Source of the DNA: Adineta vaga
Taxonomy: Eukaryota; Animalia; Rotifera
Direction of reading: 5' to 3'
Length of the DNA stretch: 64,000 bases
Assembly (NCBI GenBank): GCA_021613535.1
Contig: CP075495.1
Location: 12,772,001 to 12,836,000 of the forward strand
Shown: positions 4,234-63,369 of the stretch, piece by piece
Numbering within the stretch: the first letter of the stretch is position 1
Layout: every line of letters starts with the position of its first letter
Notes under the pieces: model-generated
What the model was told of the DNA's origin: nothing
The model's database searches: none
The model's input: the letters and a program-made list of their open reading frames with translations, nothing else
Position numbers and translations under genes: made by a program

Positions 4234-7200
4234 TGTGATTCGATTTCAAGAGATTATAATACTTAATGTAGAGATGTACAATCGAACAATATGTATCAAA
4301 TATAAAACAAAAGTCTATTACTGGATTTCGTAATGATGTATCTTCTTTTTCTTTTCTCTCTTATTCTATTTCTTCTCGTTATTGTCTTCTTCTTCTTCTC
4401 TCTGGTTTCCTTTTATCTGGTTGGTCGATTGAGACTATGTTTGATGGAAGGATCGAATAGCAATTAAGAAACGTTTTTTTTCTTCTTCTCCTTTCTCTCT
4501 TAGTATTGATGATGCTGATGTACCAGCAAACTGATAACAGATGAAGGCAAAGAAATCGAGTACTCAATGATAAGATATTTAAGTTGAGAACGAATGATCA
4601 AATTAAAGTGTGAGAATATTCTTTTTTTTACTATTATATGAAACAATACATCGAAACAAACATATTTTACTCATTCCATTATAAATTGTTTGTAAGAAAA
4701 CAATTTGAAAAATTCAATCTATACGAAGGATTGGTATGTTTTGATGGCATTGCTTGATTGAAAAATCCAGAGAAAAATAACTGATCGATCATGATGTTCG
4801 AGTAAGATAAAAACAGGTGTGTGTTTTGTCGAAGAAATTACTATTAGTCATTATTGTCTGTAAAAACGATTACAGTAGAAAAGACATTTATCGATTGTCA
4901 AGAAAGATAATGGCACAATTCAACTAGAGAAATAGAACAATACTACACAAATGATGATCATTCTATGAAAGACAAGAAACAAAATCAATTATATTCATGT
5001 CAAAAATGTATAGATGGATATGTATCTCTAAGAAATAAATGAATATCGACAATCGTTTGAATGCAAAGAAAACATGGAAGAAGATATTTTATTTATTCAT
5101 GTTTTGTTTTGTTTGAGAAAAAAAGGAAAATTTCGAGAGATGAAAGAGAAGAGAAAAAATTAGTATAAATGACAAAAGGTAATTACTTCGTTTTTTTCTT
5201 TTACTTTTATCTCTATATGAGCTCGAAGCTACTCCCTCGGTGGGGAAACACATCGATGATGTTGGACTTTGTTAATTGATATGTTGGAGTTCTATTCCAC
5301 TGAGAATGATATGCTTACATTGGATCGATACCGATGAGTAAAGAACAAAGCAAATTAGGCTGTGATTTTCGTCTCAAGAATCGTGGGTGGTCGATATTTA
5401 TATATACATATATATATATATCTAGAAATACGTATATACACACATACATGCTGGAGAAGAATCTTCTTAATCTAAAATGTTAAATAAACATACGTATATA
5501 AGAACGTATATGTCCTTGCGAGAGAAAAAGAAAATCGCCTATGAGCATTGGGAATTCATATGAGATAACAAGAGCACATCATTTATTAATATAGAATTAC
5601 AAATATTTAGAAGTTAATAAGAAAAAATTTGTTTTCTATATGAATTATACATCTGAAAGAAGGAGAGCAAAGCATTGATAATTGTTTGAAAATAGTTTTC
5701 ATGGTTAGATGATTTTTTTTTTCATTTCGAATGCTAATGATATATCGATCGCTGATCGATTCGGCATATTCTTTTTAGCTAAAAAAAATTGATACACTAT
5801 TCGTGATGGTTTAAGAATTAAAAATGCAGAGAAAAAAAGGCAAGCTCATTAGTTCCGGTAATCAATTGATCGGCATGTTGAAGAATAAGTCAGAGCTAAA
5901 GAGAAGAAGAAACACCGACACGTTGATGCTTCTTCGTTTTTCGAATTGTATTTAATGTTTCCCCAGAGGGGGTGAATGTTTGATCAAGTGATGGAAAAAA
6001 ACCTATCAATGTTATGAATCGAATACGGTCGTGTCTTTTGCTGAATATATTTTAATGAAGGAAAAATTCATTTTCATAATGATTTATAACTACACTGACT
6101 TGTTTCATTTTTCTCAGAGCAAAGTAATAATTTCGATTTATGTAAATGCGCATCATCTTTCAAAAGATATTGTTTTCTGCTTATCTTGAAAAATAATGGA
6201 GTAAAATGAATATGTACTGATAATTAATCAAGATAGGAATCGAATTTTTAAACTTTATACTTGTGTATTTGTTCGATATACGAAGAATGACTCTTTTTTC
6301 GTCAAAAAAAGTTTTGTTTTGTGTGTTTTAAAAATGGAGCGCATCCAGTTTCCTCAGATAAATCTAAAAGATATAATTTATCAATAATTGAAAATCAAAA
6401 AACGACACAGTATTTCATATTTGATGTTTCTTATAACAAGACTTGTCTAACGTCTTTCATTGGACAACAAAGCGATCGTACAGAAATATTTTCGCACGTT
6501 GAAGAATTTCCTCAAAAAAAGCAAACAATACATCATAAACAATATGGCAACCTAACGTTCGATAGGTAATTGAATAGAAGAGTAAAGCAAATTATTTGTA
6601 AACGATAAAAATCGTAAATTCCTATTCAATGAATTCGTGCTTGTCATAATTATTAGAATAGTGTCGATTGAGAACAGCAGGATGTTAAAAAATTCTACAC
6701 CAGCAAACTTTCGTTTGATAAAATATTCCGGAAAGTGATTTCTGTTTGCCTTTCCATCAATATACTAAAGCAAATATTTATCTTTTCTTTTCCATAATTC
6801 TCTTTCTTTGAATAACAAAAGTCAAGTGTTGATTGATAAAATAAAATCAAGTTTTACATAAAACATCCAAGGCGATTTATTGTTATAAACCGAATAGATA
6901 GAGACAACAGTTATAAAAATGCACAGATTAAATGATAAATGACAAAGAAAATAATAACAACAACAACAATTATGATAAAAATATTTCTTTCTTCAACGTT
7001 TCAGCTTAATTCAGATGATTCACAATTTGTTGATTTTGTTAAACAAAAGACGAATATTTTTTTCAAGAATAAACTCTCTATCAATACATCGAAAAATACG
7101 ACATTTATATTTTTTATATAAAAAACCATGAATAGTAAGGAACATTACAGGACAACAATTATAAATGATAGTCGAATGTATTTATACGTATATATGGTTT

Positions 7201-57496: not shown

Positions 57497-59106
57497 ATGT
57501 CGAATATTAAGAAATTCTTTTCGAAAATGAAAAGTGAAGTGAAATTTGCTAGAGCAGGTGATGGACATCGACTAAATGATCCGATACCGGCATCCACTCA
57601 ACGCAATACGACAGCACAAGCATGTCCACAAAGAAATTCACAACAAAATTCTGATCGTAGTGCAGCTGCTCGTGCTGCTGCAGAAGCTGCACAACAACGT
57701 TTTCAACATCAAACATCAACGCAACAGACCTCAAGTATGTCTATAAATCTCTAATGACAAGTTCTTGCTGAATTTTAATTCTCAATAATATCATATAAAA
57801 CTGTTAATGATTTGAATCAGGGAGAAGAAAAAACCATTTTGAAATCTTTTAGCTAGTCGTACAGCAGACAGTGTTCGTCGTCAAGCTCAACGTGAACTTG
57901 AACAAGAAAAAGCACTTGAAAATCAATTTCAACAAGCTTTAGAATTAAAAGAACATTATTTTGGCAATCGACAAGTATGTTTCTATTTCATTTCTTATTT
58001 TTCTACATATTGCTATTTACCTACAGATTAGTATTGAAAGTTCTCCTGTAGTTGATCATTCCAATTTTCTCTTTAAATGTCCAGATGTATTTGGTGAAGA
58101 AGTTAGTTTACCTTATAATGAATTACAACAACAAATAGAAGAAACTCTTCGATTACAACTTGATTCTGAACCTCTTGTTGCTGCTACACTTCTTTTCTTA
58201 ACAACTAATCAAAAAGAACAAGAAAAATTAAATACTGGCAAAGAAATCATCTGTAAATATTTCGATAATATAATTGCGAATCCTGATGAAGATAAATATC
58301 GTCGAATTCGATTACAAAATAAAGTTTATCTTGAAGTAACTGAACATTCTTTTTTACAAATTTTTCGATCAAATAATTCATGACTATTCGTTTAGAAAGT
58401 TGCACCATTAAAATATGCACTCGAATTTTTACAAGCTAGTGGTTTTTTCATATCTGATGATCAGGAATCAATTGTCTATCAAGATGGTTCCATTGAACCT
58501 TTACAATTAGCACAAGATACATTAATGAATGGTGAACCAATTCAAGTACAACTCGATCGAAATTTAAAACTTTTTCAACCAACAAAAGATCGACCATCGA
58601 TTCCGCCTGTTCAACTTTTCCCACAAGATCCATTATTTTATCAATCAACAGTTGGAGATGTTTTACGTGAAAAACAACGACAGAAAGATCTTGTTGAAAA
58701 AGAAGAAATGCTTCGAACCAAAGCAATGCGTGAACGTGATCAAAAATCGGAATCAAATGCTCAATATAAATATACAGTTCTTCGTATTCGAATGCCAAAT
58801 GAAATGATAATGCAAATGATTTTTCAAGCCAATGATTCTCTTTCATCATTGTTTGATTATTTACGTTCTTATTGTCTTGTACATGATTGGTTACCATTTT
58901 CATTACTATCCAATGCTGATCGACGAATTTATACTAGTCAAGATGAAAATGCTTTCACATTTAATCAATGTGGTCTTGTTCCAGCTGCTGTATTATCATT
59001 TCGATGGGATGAACAAGCTTTACGTGATGTACAAAAACAAACACCTAATTTTCCAGCTGATAATTTTATTAAACCCGAAATACTTGCAAATGCAAATCGA
59101 TTATGA
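57497..59106 (+). CDS. UBXN6: UBX domain protein 6 (VIM, PUB and UBX domains)
   Basis: IKKFFSKMKSEVKFARAGDGHRL, RAAAEAAQQR (VIM-like), KYFDNIIANPDEDKYRRIRLQNKVY (PUB), MLRTKAMRE and YKYTVLRIRMPNE (UBX). Confidence 0.93.
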
Positions 59107-59266
59107 ACTGTATAACTAAAATATATCTATTTATTTTTTGTAATATTTTATGTTTGGTTTGCTTAACATCAGTTTTTGTCTTATATTTTCGCTCGAAGTT
59201 TATGCTATATGTAACTGTATGTATGTATTTCAGAAACAGCTGATTGAAAAAATATAGTTGATAAAA

Positions 59267-61844
59267 ATGAAATCAGATGTATTAAAGTTATTCCGTGCGG
59301 CTATTGGTGCTGTTGATCCATATCTATGTGTTAAACATCATCTTGTTTTTAATGCTCATCGTACAAATGATGAAAAGAAAGAATTACATATTGAAGACAA
59401 TGATGTCATACTTGATCATAATCTTTATATTGCAGCCTTTGGAAAAGCTGCGCTAGGTACATTAAACATAGAATTCTTGAACAAAATAATATATTTCATT
59501 TTTCTCTAAGGCATGTGTCGAGCTGTAAATGAACTGTATCATGAGCATATTATTAAAGGTATTGCTAGTATTCCTGTAGGTACTATTGAACAAGCTAAAA
59601 GGAAAGATGTTCATTTATATAAGTATCTGTGTATTTGAATAAAGTTGTTTTTAGAGATGGAATTTATCCATCATGGAATTGTTCATTTGATGTTTATGAA
59701 GGTGCACAAAATAATTTACCTGATCATGCTGCAATGACGACTGCTCAACGTATTCAAACAATGATTTCAAAGACAATGAAAGCCGATGACATTTTATTAG
59801 TGCTCATTTCAGGTAAAGTGACGTACACAAAAGAAAAACATTCGTCAAGATAAGAATACTGATGATATTTCGTTTTTATCCTTAATTTGTGTACAGAAAA
59901 GATTTTATCGACCAAACATCGGTCCGGGATTTTCTGAATAGTCATCAAAACGTCGTTGCATGTGTTCATTGTTGGATAACAGTTCAGCCAAATAATTGTC
60001 ATCATTTGTTGATGGTGATCGACTTTCTTTGCGTCGAATTACTGAATGTTCAGGATATAAACTAAAAGGACGTTTACGTATGAATATGCCTAAATTTGAT
60101 CCACGAAACAGTGGAATAGCATTGCGTGCATGAGCATCAATACGACGTTTTTCTAAATTGAATTGTTGTTCATCTACGAATGAAGTTGAACCTGCTGCTT
60201 GTTCAGTGTACATAACAAAACATAGAAGTAATAAACCTACAGTACAAAAACAGAAAGAAAATCGTCTAAATATTAATTAAGGTTATGTACCGATAATGCC
60301 GACGAATTGCATGAGAGAAACCATGATGAGATTCTTTAAGAAATATGACTAGATAAGAGCGTTGAAAGTATATCTATTTATATATGTGAGTTCTATATTT
60401 TAGTTTTATTATATATGTGTATGCTCTATTGAATTTTATCTCTTTTCTCTTCTTGTCTCTCTTTCTTTCTTCTTAGCCTTTTTTTCTTCAACAAAACTTA
60501 TCATGCAAGACATGACATAAGCGACATTAATGAAGATTTAAGAAAATTACATTGCATGAGATCTCTATGTTAAGTTGTTTGGAATTAGTAATATTTTGTG
60601 GAGGTGTACGTGCATGTATGTAGAGCAAATCGAAATAGAATGCGTGATTGAAAACATACTCGATATCTCTTAATGTTTTGAAAAAATAAACAAATTCAAA
60701 ATTGATTTAGGTGGTGGCTCCGCATTACTACCATTACCTATTGATATACTTTCACTAGAAGAAAAATATCAGATCATAAAATTATTACAAAGTAAAGGAG
60801 CAAATATTCAAGAATTGAATACAGTTCGGCAATCGATGAGTCAATTGAAAAACGGCGAACTTGCTCGAATAGCGAAATCAACAACTGTAAATAATGAATG
60901 TATTCTTTTTCTGTTACTTTACTTATTACTTTTATTTTTAATCTTAATCTAGATTATTTCATTCATCCTTTCTGATGTCATCGGTGACCCATTAGAATTT
61001 ATTGCGTCCGCACCAACATTCTACAGTGGCAATAAAAGTCATCAAACACTAGAGATTTTTAAGAACTATAATCTACTAGATTCTATTCCTACACAATTTA
61101 TTCAAAATTTAAAAGAACATGAAAATCAAAATGATAAACAAATGTTGTGAGTAGATCGTTTAAGTTGAATAAACATTCGAATGAAATATGACATCTTTTA
61201 TAAGATTTTCAACGAAACAAATTCATAATATTATCGTAGGTAGTAATCGTATTGCACTGGAAGCAGCTGCTCATTTATGTAAACAATCTAACATCTGCAT
61301 TCCATTCATAATGACCACTTGTTTACAAGGTGAAGCACGCGAAATAGGACGTCATCTGATTGAACTTATCACAACAGAACCATCGGAATTAATTTATACT
61401 AATGATATTGCTTGTTTCTTTACTGATAAATCTACATTTGAAAGATATCAAGTGTTCGTTAAAGAAAACAAACGTTATTGTTTATTATTAGGTGGTGAAA
61501 CGACAGTAGTCTTGAAAGATAATCCAGGAAAAGGTGGTCGATGTCAAGAACTTGCACTATCCGCTGCATTAACTATCGATAATCAAAATAAGAATATTTC
61601 AGTACTTTTATTAGCAGCTGGTACTGATGGTATCGATGGACCAACAGATGCTGCTGGTGCTTTTGCATTTACCGGTATGATTACTGATCAAAATGATATT
61701 CAACGAGCTCGTAATGCACTTGATAAACATGATGCATATACATATTTAAATGAAACAAACAATGGAGAAAATCTTTTTAAAATTGGACATACAAACACAA
61801 ATGTAATGGATATTATTCTAGTGCTTGTTGATAGAAAAGAATAA
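59267..61844 (+). CDS. GLYCTK: Glycerate kinase (MOFRL family)
   Basis: AFGKAALGM, EGAQNNLPD, LVLISGGGSALL, GANIQELNTVR, SDVIGDPLEFIASAPT, GGETTV..GKGGRCQELAL, AAGTDGIDGPTDAAGA and TNVMD. One enlarged intron at about 59813-60710. Confidence 0.95.
59905..60324 (-). CDS. Nested neuropeptide precursor (121 aa) with sulfakinin/CCK-like amidated C-terminal peptide
   Basis: Exons 60324-60291 and 60236-59905 with a 54-nt GT-AG intron. Signal peptide MVSLMQFVGIIGLLLLCFVMYTEQAAG. Basic sites KRR, RKR, RRK and RR. Ends RR-FDDYSENPGPMF-G-R-stop. Confidence 0.85.
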
Positions 61845-62198
61845 CGATTATCTTTTCAAATAAATTGCTACAGTTTCAAATTTATCTCCTGTATTATCAG
61901 TTATGACAGATTAATGCACTCAAGACTTTTGCTAACTCTTAACATCTGTTCGCGTTTTTTGTTCTTTCATTATGAATATTATTAGTTTTATTTTAATTAT
62001 TTCCTTTTCTCTATCTATTGTTTCTTTTTGACTTCTTCTGAGTAGAGAACGTGATATATCATCCTGTCAAATATACTCTATTACTTCCCTGATTAGTAAT
62101 AATGTCATGAGAAAAGAATACTTGAAAAAAACTAAAAATCAATCGAAAAAAGCGCAAATTTGTGTATAAAATCTATCTTAAATGTTTCATCATTTCGT

Positions 62199-62715: not shown

Positions 62716-63369
62716 CTACCAAGACAAATATATAAACATAGAATATAAGATCAAGAAAACAAATGAACAAGATAATTTTGTACTCATCGATGACAGCCAT
62801 TGATTATTGGTTTGATTCGATAGTTGTTTTTGTAATTTCATACTACGATATTGATAATTGTCATTTTTTGAATAACGTCGATAATATTTTTGTACATCGA
62901 TAATTAATCGAAAATTTTTTGTACGACATAAACCATCGAATTTTTGATTAATACCTGTTTGTTGTCCATTTGATGTTGAAATAAAATAATACGAATGTCC
63001 ATCGAGAAATTCCGGCATATTTGGATATGGTAAATATTTTGAAATCGATAATGTATATATCATACGTTTCGAACTATGAGGTTGATCACAACGAATCAAT
63101 GGTTGATATTTTTCTGTAAAACATAAATTATAATCGATTTCTGAAACTAAATATAATGTATTATATTCAACGGATGATGAAGGATGATTTGAATGTGGAC
63201 AAAGAAAATCAATTGTATCACCAAGACGAACATTAAATACCGATGATTTAGATTGAAAGAATGTATTTGAAGAATTCCATTCAATTTGATAGTTTTGTCG
63301 ACGACGAATTTGACAAGATGATAGATGAACAATATTTAAGATGAAATAAATAACGATTAAATATAACAT
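62716..63369 (-). CDS. Ephrin (cupredoxin fold, probably GPI-anchored)
   Basis: Signal peptide, IEWNSSNTFF, VRLGDTIDFLCP, LYLVSEIDYNLC, EFLDGHSYYFISTSNG, GLCRTKNFRL and a hydrophobic C-terminus. Confidence 0.92.
   Translation of the reverse strand: MLYLIVIYFILNIVHLSSCQIRRRQNYQIEWNSSNTFFQSKSSVFNVRLGDTIDFLCPHSNHPSSSVEYNTLYLVSEIDYNLCFTEKYQPLIRCDQPHSSKRMIYTLSISKYLPYPNMPEFLDGHSYYFISTSNGQQTGINQKFDGLCRTKNFRLIIDVQKYYRRYSKNDNYQYRSMKLQKQLSNQTNNQWLSSMSTKLSCSFVFLILYSMFIYLSW

Follow-up and report, generated by a model that had tools for sequence, protein, structure and literature searches.

The gene analysed here is a small two-exon gene on the minus strand, nested in the long intron of a glycerate kinase gene of the bdelloid rotifer Adineta vaga. 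It lies in the window C2:12772001-12836000, the whole stretch of 64,000 nucleotides (nt) that was studied, and probably encodes a bdelloid-specific precursor of 121 amino acids (aa) for two neuropeptides or hormones, the C-terminal one probably sulfated and amidated. Its closest described counterparts are the arthropod sulfakinins, such as Drosophila DSK-1 (FDDYGHMRFamide), and the vertebrate cholecystokinin (CCK) and gastrin peptides. These share with the predicted rotifer product an acidic-flanked tyrosine suited to sulfation and a terminal Phe-amide, for which Gly and a basic residue provide the signal, and they too lie at the extreme C-terminal end of a short precursor. The rotifer peptide also begins with FDDY, as does DSK-1. 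In contrast, the rotifer core is NPGPMF, without Arg or Asp before Phe, where theirs is GHMRF or GWMDF. The spacing between Tyr and Phe is longer in the rotifer (eight, compared with six in CCK-8 and five in insect sulfakinin), and there is no similarity at the profile level. We know of no counterpart in DSK-1- or CCK-type precursors of the second, better-conserved and non-amidated peptide of the rotifer precursor.

Within the same superphylum, spiralian sulfakinins end in ...GGGRFamide, as in the phoronid peptide DYGIGGGRFamide (PMC8557429, supplement). In that peptide, Tyr stands seven residues before the amidated Phe, near the eight of the rotifer, but the defining Gly-Gly-Gly-Arg-Phe core is absent from the rotifer peptide. 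With bilaterian precursors of amidated peptides in general, the rotifer gene shares a signal peptide, di- and tribasic sites, conserved peptides with rapidly evolving spacers between them, a Gly donor and small size; it differs from them in belonging to a family with no detectable homologue beyond Bdelloidea. Like other nested antisense genes of animals, it lies on the opposite strand in a host intron, keeps its synteny across genera and probably has its own promoter, whereas its 3' untranslated region (3'UTR) and poly(A) signal enter the upstream exon of the host and its duplicate has outlived the host. Rotifer neuropeptides are barely charted, and Gnathifera have been called the 'next frontier' (Thiel et al. 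2021, PMC8557429). Neither the peptide strings nor 'PMFamide' turned up in searches of full-text literature, and the family does not occur among the Rotaria sequences of part of the De Oliveira 2019 supplement.

Gene model and transcripts

The genome searched was the A. vaga assembly (100.8 Mb, six contigs, 30% GC). The gene is transcribed, spliced and polyadenylated. We aligned cDNA-type contigs from four runs to positions 59200-61900 of the window. In contigs from two independent studies (run X1 of study P1 and run X8 of study P4), the joint 60234->60289 skips 54 nt, which reads CT..AC on the plus strand with a cut of +2, i.e., GT..AG on the minus strand. The earlier note on this DNA had proposed a minus-strand, two-exon gene in the GLYCTK intron with a junction at 60291/60236, and this is the junction found. 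The same model is recorded at NCBI: the 121-aa 'hypothetical protein I4U23_009756 [Adineta vaga]' equals the translation of exon 1, the junction Gly and the translation of exon 2. The gene model was thus already available, but nameless ('hypothetical' or 'unnamed').

Both ends of the transcript are marked in the contigs. At the 5' end, the X8 contig stops at 60385 and runs on into adaptor sequence, which we take to be the 3' part of the SMART cap-switch oligo, and the depth of X1 ceases at ~60382. The adaptor places the 5' end of the mRNA at 60385 and gives it the orientation of the minus strand. At the 3' end, ~21 T precede position 59765 (plus strand) in an X5 contig, corresponding to a minus-strand poly(A) tail. 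The terminal 48 nt of the transcript, with 3'UTR and AATAAA, overlap the end of host exon 3 in antisense; the nested gene is therefore not purely intronic. The idea that it lies wholly in the intron holds for the coding part, but not for the 3'UTR.

An open reading frame (ORF) of this length is presumably expected about once per 64 kb by chance at 30% GC. As length alone is near chance level, the reality of the gene rests on splicing, polyadenylation and purifying selection. Variants in other samples comprised two synonymous and two spacer substitutions (S83T and M104I), and the conserved peptides were untouched. Exon 1 has homologues in a paralogue on contig C5, in Rotaria and in other bdelloids. 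The annotated Rotaria sp. Silwood2 protein P0010 begins with MNSSFLFLLYFIEG, which looks like intron read-through (~4945-4980 of its locus). The conserved exon 1, MVSFMQLVCVTG, lies just upstream of that start, and the database model is probably mis-started.

Table 1. Positions in the window of the nested gene, its predicted products, the conserved upstream blocks, the host intron and the neighbouring genes
Feature	Position	Strand	Description
Nested mRNA	~59765 to ~60385	minus	~567 nt spliced; from cDNA contig ends
ATG start	60324	minus	opens 34-nt coding stretch
Exon 1, coding	60291-60324	minus	MVSLMQFVGII and first base of Gly12 codon; N-terminal half of predicted signal peptide
Intron	60237-60290	minus	54 nt, phase 1, GT..AG (GT 60290-60289; AG 60238-60237)
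Exon 2, coding including stop	59905-60236	minus	rest of predicted signal peptide and pro-peptide; stop 59907-59905
Predicted peptide 1, IDAHARNAIPLFRGSNLGIFI	60079-60141	minus	residues 44-64, 21 aa, between KRR and RKR; non-amidated
Predicted peptide 2, FDDYSENPGPMF	59908-59949	minus	residues 108-119 with Gly120 (amide donor) and Arg121
Tyr111 of predicted peptide 2	59938-59940	minus	candidate sulfation site
AATAAA polyadenylation signal	59792-59797	minus	antisense within host exon 3; poly(A) site 27 nt downstream
Conserved block 1	60522-60561	minus	TCTCATGCAATGTAATTT..AAATCTTCATTAATGTCG; likely promoter/enhancer element
Conserved block 2	60640-60650	minus	(A/C)AATCACGCAT
Host intron, glycerate kinase gene	59813-60710	plus	898 nt; joint 59810->60709, cut +2, GT..AG
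PUB/UBX-domain gene	57961-59106	plus	upstream neighbour of host
Ephrin-like gene	62716-63369	minus	downstream neighbour of host

Conserved peptides and predicted processing

Near its N-terminus, the precursor has the hydrophobic core IIGLLLLCFVM, with a mean Kyte-Doolittle value of 3.2. A region of small residues comes next, and the remainder is hydrophilic (mean Kyte-Doolittle -1.0). By hydrophobicity, this start is a predicted signal peptide, and it is kept across the exon junction in all species compared. The hydrophobic core spans the junction of exons 1 and 2, consistent with the proposal that splicing supplies the signal peptide. Exon 2 has the layout G-LLLLCFVMYTEQAAGSTSFVDEQQFNLE-KRR-IDAHARNAIPLFRGSNLGIFI-RKR-PFSLYPEHSVI-RRK-ESRSPSTNDDNYLAELLSNNEHMQ-RR-FDDYSENPGPMF-G-R-stop, with ...QRRFDDYSENPGPMFGR-stop as the C-terminal end of its translation, and the peptides and basic sites are exactly as the earlier note had written them. 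That note overlooked the internal non-amidated peptide, whose core, IPLFRGSNLGIFV, is the best-conserved block of the whole family. The mature part of the precursor contains no Cys.

A database search alone yielded 64 homologues, of which those with a species name belong to Adineta steineri and to several species of Rotaria. An exhaustive profile search of 1.8 billion representatives added a member from Didymodactylos carnosus and returned no kin beyond the bdelloid family. Altogether, 78 homologues were found. All named ones are bdelloid (Adineta, Rotaria and Didymodactylos), and the rest are unnamed sequences from metagenomes or read assemblies. As far as sequence searches reach, the family is bdelloid-specific.

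Two blocks of the precursor are near-invariant, IPLFRGSNLGIFV-RKRP and QRR-FDDYSENPGPMF-G(R), with spacers and signal-peptide sequence being variable. The IPLFRGSNLGIFV core is identical in 61 of 76 sequences and is directly followed by RKRP in 75 of 76. Identity of FDDYSENPGPMF was seen in 60 of 77 sequences and QRR before it in 56. A Tyr at position -8 relative to the final Phe is found in 76 of the 77, and this spacing is kept in Didymodactylos (HEYDDSAGPMFG) despite different flanking residues. The tail of the precursor is GR in 62 sequences, Gly followed by the stop in 14, and AR in one (n = 77); the terminal Gly is therefore retained in 76, including those in which the ORF stops immediately behind it. 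The cleavage sites, the C-terminal peptide, the acidic-flanked Tyr and the Gly donor on which the earlier note had built its case have all been preserved in the family at these frequencies.

We estimated selection as pairwise ratios of nonsynonymous to synonymous substitution rates (dN/dS, Nei-Gojobori) from codon alignments of seven genomic copies, with dS of 0.35-1.3. The ratio was 0.04-0.25 in the two peptide blocks versus 0.28-0.76 in the rest (1.07 for the rest against Didymodactylos). Constraint on the host gene cannot explain the conservation of the peptide blocks because the coding part is intronic. Conserved peptides between conserved basic sites, separated by divergent spacers, make up a pattern that, judged from the alignments, reads as the classical signature of a neuropeptide precursor.

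Genes for the two modifying enzymes are present in the genome. For sulfation, there is an orthologue of tyrosylprotein sulfotransferase (TPST; E 3e-48 to human TPST2) at C2:12340570-12341260, which has a partner on C5. For amidation, a strong match to a PHM-type copper monooxygenase lies at C6:4738937 (E 3e-40). The DDY-S-E-N-P-G context suits the known preference of TPST. With its acidic context, its fixed position and a TPST gene in the genome, the Tyr is predicted to be sulfated; with Gly as the last or penultimate residue of 76 of 77 sequences and a PHM-type gene in the genome, the C-terminus is predicted to be amidated.

For the gene and its products we infer secretion, cleavage, sulfation, amidation, neuronal expression and a receptor, in the following sequence of events. 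The gene would be transcribed from its own promoter within the long glycerate kinase intron, and the signal peptide split over two exons would direct the product into the secretory pathway. Tyrosylprotein sulfotransferase would then sulfate Tyr111 in its acidic, turn-rich context, prohormone convertases would cleave at KRR, RKR, RRK and QRR, a carboxypeptidase would trim the basic residues, and PHM/PAL would turn the C-terminal Gly into an amide. This would yield a non-amidated peptide of 21 residues, with the IPLFRGSNLGIFV core, and FDDY(SO3)SENPGPMF-NH2, both of which presumably act on G protein-coupled receptors (GPCRs).

Several points weigh against this reading of the gene as a processed neuropeptide precursor. 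Pro is invariant directly after the RKR of peptide 1, and a Pro in that position may hinder cleavage by convertases. The C5 copy has RH instead of RR before peptide 2, which there begins with SDDY, and in one of the 77 homologues Ala replaces the amide-donor Gly. The evidence is at the level of sequence and transcripts. Expression was seen in whole-sample cDNA contigs; the run type 'RNA' is a guess, but an origin from cDNA is shown by the adaptor, the poly(A) tail and the presence of spliced joints on both strands.

Family assignment and receptor candidates

The earlier note had offered a divergent sulfakinin/CCK-type peptide or, failing that, a new peptide family. Membership of the sulfakinin/CCK family is not supported by the sequence comparisons. 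Neither of the Pfam families Gastrin (PF00918) and Sulfakinin (PF08257) matched any of four family members at E <= 10, and profile kin were confined to bdelloids. Weak Pfam matches to MGT5A_N and PspB lay far below the cut-off and were dismissed. A C-terminal core of the form G-x-(M/G)-(R/D)-F-amide or G-G-G-R-(F/W)-amide was not found; 60 of 77 sequences end in N-P-G-P-M-F-G(R), which would give ...NPGPMFamide, without Arg or Asp before Phe. A pattern search of the genome for a canonical sulfakinin gene ending in GGGRFG[KR] gave a single match, which was a chance one in a non-peptide context. In an ESM-Atlas feature search, the neighbours were DH31-like, PDH, galanin, NPFF, tachykinin and CCK precursors (0.87-0.91); they are unspecific and below the recognition threshold, and lend weak support to the neuropeptide class. 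A new peptide family fits this evidence best. The resemblance to sulfakinins is functional and architectural, with homology being doubtful.

We also scanned the genome for candidate receptors. A scan with PF00001 (7tm_1) gave 1955 first-look candidates, a number too large to single out a receptor. The signature I-S-x-E-R-Y-x-A-I-C of the third transmembrane segment (TM3) was found at eight loci, and those compared with structures in the PDB were opioid-like, ghrelin-like and orexin-like. The best TM3 candidate pair scored 71 bits against orexin receptors versus 60 bits against CCK1R. In the pair C2:7356197 and C5:10969050, the TM3 motif is ISFERFIAIC, and among solved structures the exon covering TM1-3 comes nearest to orexin receptors (E 8e-19); judged by this similarity, it is likely an allatotropin/orexin-type receptor. 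The TM7 signature N-P-x-x-Y-C-F-M-N retrieved a tachykinin-like receptor and an orphan pair. The paralogous ORFs C2:3101785 and C5:14283975 (460-472 aa) have an extracellular-looking N-terminus, a very long loop with poly-Cys and a TM6-TM7 end with NPIIYCFMN, and look like halves of unusual orphan GPCRs. A clear CCK-type receptor was not found in the two motif-guided scans (TM3 and TM7), which are far from exhaustive and do not imply its absence.

Host gene, paralogue and alternative explanations

The host is a GLYCTK-type glycerate kinase (DUF4147 and MOFRL, from Pfam on orthologous host genes) and is single-copy in the assembly. Its introns in X1 measure 54, 53, 898, 66 and 58 nt on the plus strand; four are GT..AG, and the 53-nt joint is listed as AG..TT. 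The description of a single long intron was accurate, the other four being 53-66 nt. A. steineri and Rotaria sp. Silwood2 have the same nesting and the same neighbours (PUB/UBX, zf-C2H2, LUC7 and Ephrin), so that the nesting in GLYCTK is shared by the A copies of Adineta and Rotaria. The two conserved blocks upstream of the gene are shared by Adineta and Rotaria. The first has changed little or not at all in A. steineri and the Rotaria A copies, and ahead of the B copies the blocks are recognisable but degenerate. ATGCAAT and CATTAATG within them resemble, in our own reading, POU or homeodomain sites. This conservation suggests that the gene has its own, autonomous promoter.

The paralogue, at C5:6940861-6941178, shares 58% identity with the nested gene and likewise consists of two exons separated by an intron of the same phase. 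It is transcribed: cDNA contigs with loose ends at 60068 and 60117 match the C5 sequence, and its depth in X5 is high. Both paralogues, which stem from whole-genome duplication, have thus been kept and are transcribed. In A. vaga, A. steineri and Rotaria, the block with the B-type paralogue consists of MFS, aldo-keto reductase, the peptide gene, zf-C2H2 and LUC7, with GLYCTK gone; the duplicated block on C5 also lacks PUB/UBX. In Didymodactylos carnosus, weak, collinear and stop-containing GLYCTK-like fragments (E ~1e-3) flank an intact peptide gene (locus 5149-5430 and 6751-7166), and these fragments may be a decaying host gene. The nesting is old, yet the peptide gene is independent of the host, which is incidental. 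With the paralogue still present and transcribed where GLYCTK has been lost, a functional tie to the metabolic host is unlikely. We therefore rejected a functional link between GLYCTK and the peptide, and the suggestion of a metabolic signal hosted by a metabolic gene is weakened accordingly.

The same host-free copies bear on the reading that the nested transcript is mainly a natural antisense regulator of glycerate kinase, with coding being secondary. It could draw on the 48-nt overlap with host exon 3, on the presence of both transcripts in one run and on the nesting conserved in the A copies. The strong purifying selection seen in the codons of the peptide blocks, the retention and transcription of a paralogue without GLYCTK in three species, and the intact peptide gene of Didymodactylos amid weak, stop-containing GLYCTK remnants speak against it. 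The host-free paralogues largely refute this reading, and we give it hardly any credence. It is improbable, for a different set of reasons, that the product is a small secreted protein or peptide that serves outside the nervous system (gland, antimicrobial or stress) and whose basic sites and Gly were kept on other grounds. The high contig depth of both paralogues in whole-animal libraries would suit such a role, depth being a poor measure, as would the confinement of the family to bdelloids. Conservation, however, is concentrated in short blocks between di- and tribasic sites, and a Gly that stays last or next to last whether or not the final Arg is present is typical of precursors of amidated neuropeptides and unusual in other secreted proteins. 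The Cys-free mature part and the neuropeptide precursors among the language-model neighbours point the same way.

A third alternative is true orthology of the bdelloid gene to the CCK/sulfakinin precursor of Bilateria, with a C-terminus diverged to GPMFamide from G-x-M/G-R-Famide and a CCK/SK-type receptor; we regard this as possible, though doubtful. Its appeal lies in the FDDY shared with DSK-1, the peptide at the precursor C-terminus ending in F-G-R-stop, and a Tyr in a sulfation-type context in a genome with a TPST gene. The role of a sulfakinin is also not visibly taken, given the absence of a GGGRFG[KR] gene in the pattern search. The 2024 NP-HMMer preprint reports ~20 peptide families for rotifers, and sulfakinin does not appear anywhere in its main text, in connection with rotifers or with other animals. 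Against orthology stand the lack of a Pfam Gastrin or Sulfakinin match and the restriction of profile hits to bdelloids. The peptide is also without Arg or Asp at -2 and without the Gly-rich core of DYGIGGGRFamide-like spiralian forms, and its Tyr lies eight residues before Phe rather than the seven of the phoronid peptide or the six and five of CCK-8 and insect sulfakinin. The TM3 and TM7 scans, which are far from exhaustive, gave orexin-, opioid-, ghrelin- and tachykinin-like receptors and no clear CCK type. A bdelloid-specific precursor of two peptides thus remains our preferred reading. More speculatively, and in our judgement unlikely, FDDY(SO3)SENPGPMF-NH2 would be the missing gnathiferan member of the CCK/sulfakinin family with a remodelled C-terminus, co-released with the IPLFRGSNLGIFV-core peptide, which would have a separate receptor. 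If true, this would mean a two-ligand satiety or feeding signal in rotifers and a wider sequence range of CCK-type ligands.

The practical value of the finding is moderate: it adds a ligand candidate for an under-sampled phylum and no new principle. For the evolution of neuropeptides, no branch has been sampled less than Gnathifera, rotifers included. The locus is also a clean example of a nested gene that outlives its host after whole-genome duplication. It provides two concrete predicted peptides for receptor deorphanisation in A. vaga, which serves as a model of asexuality and of tolerance to desiccation.

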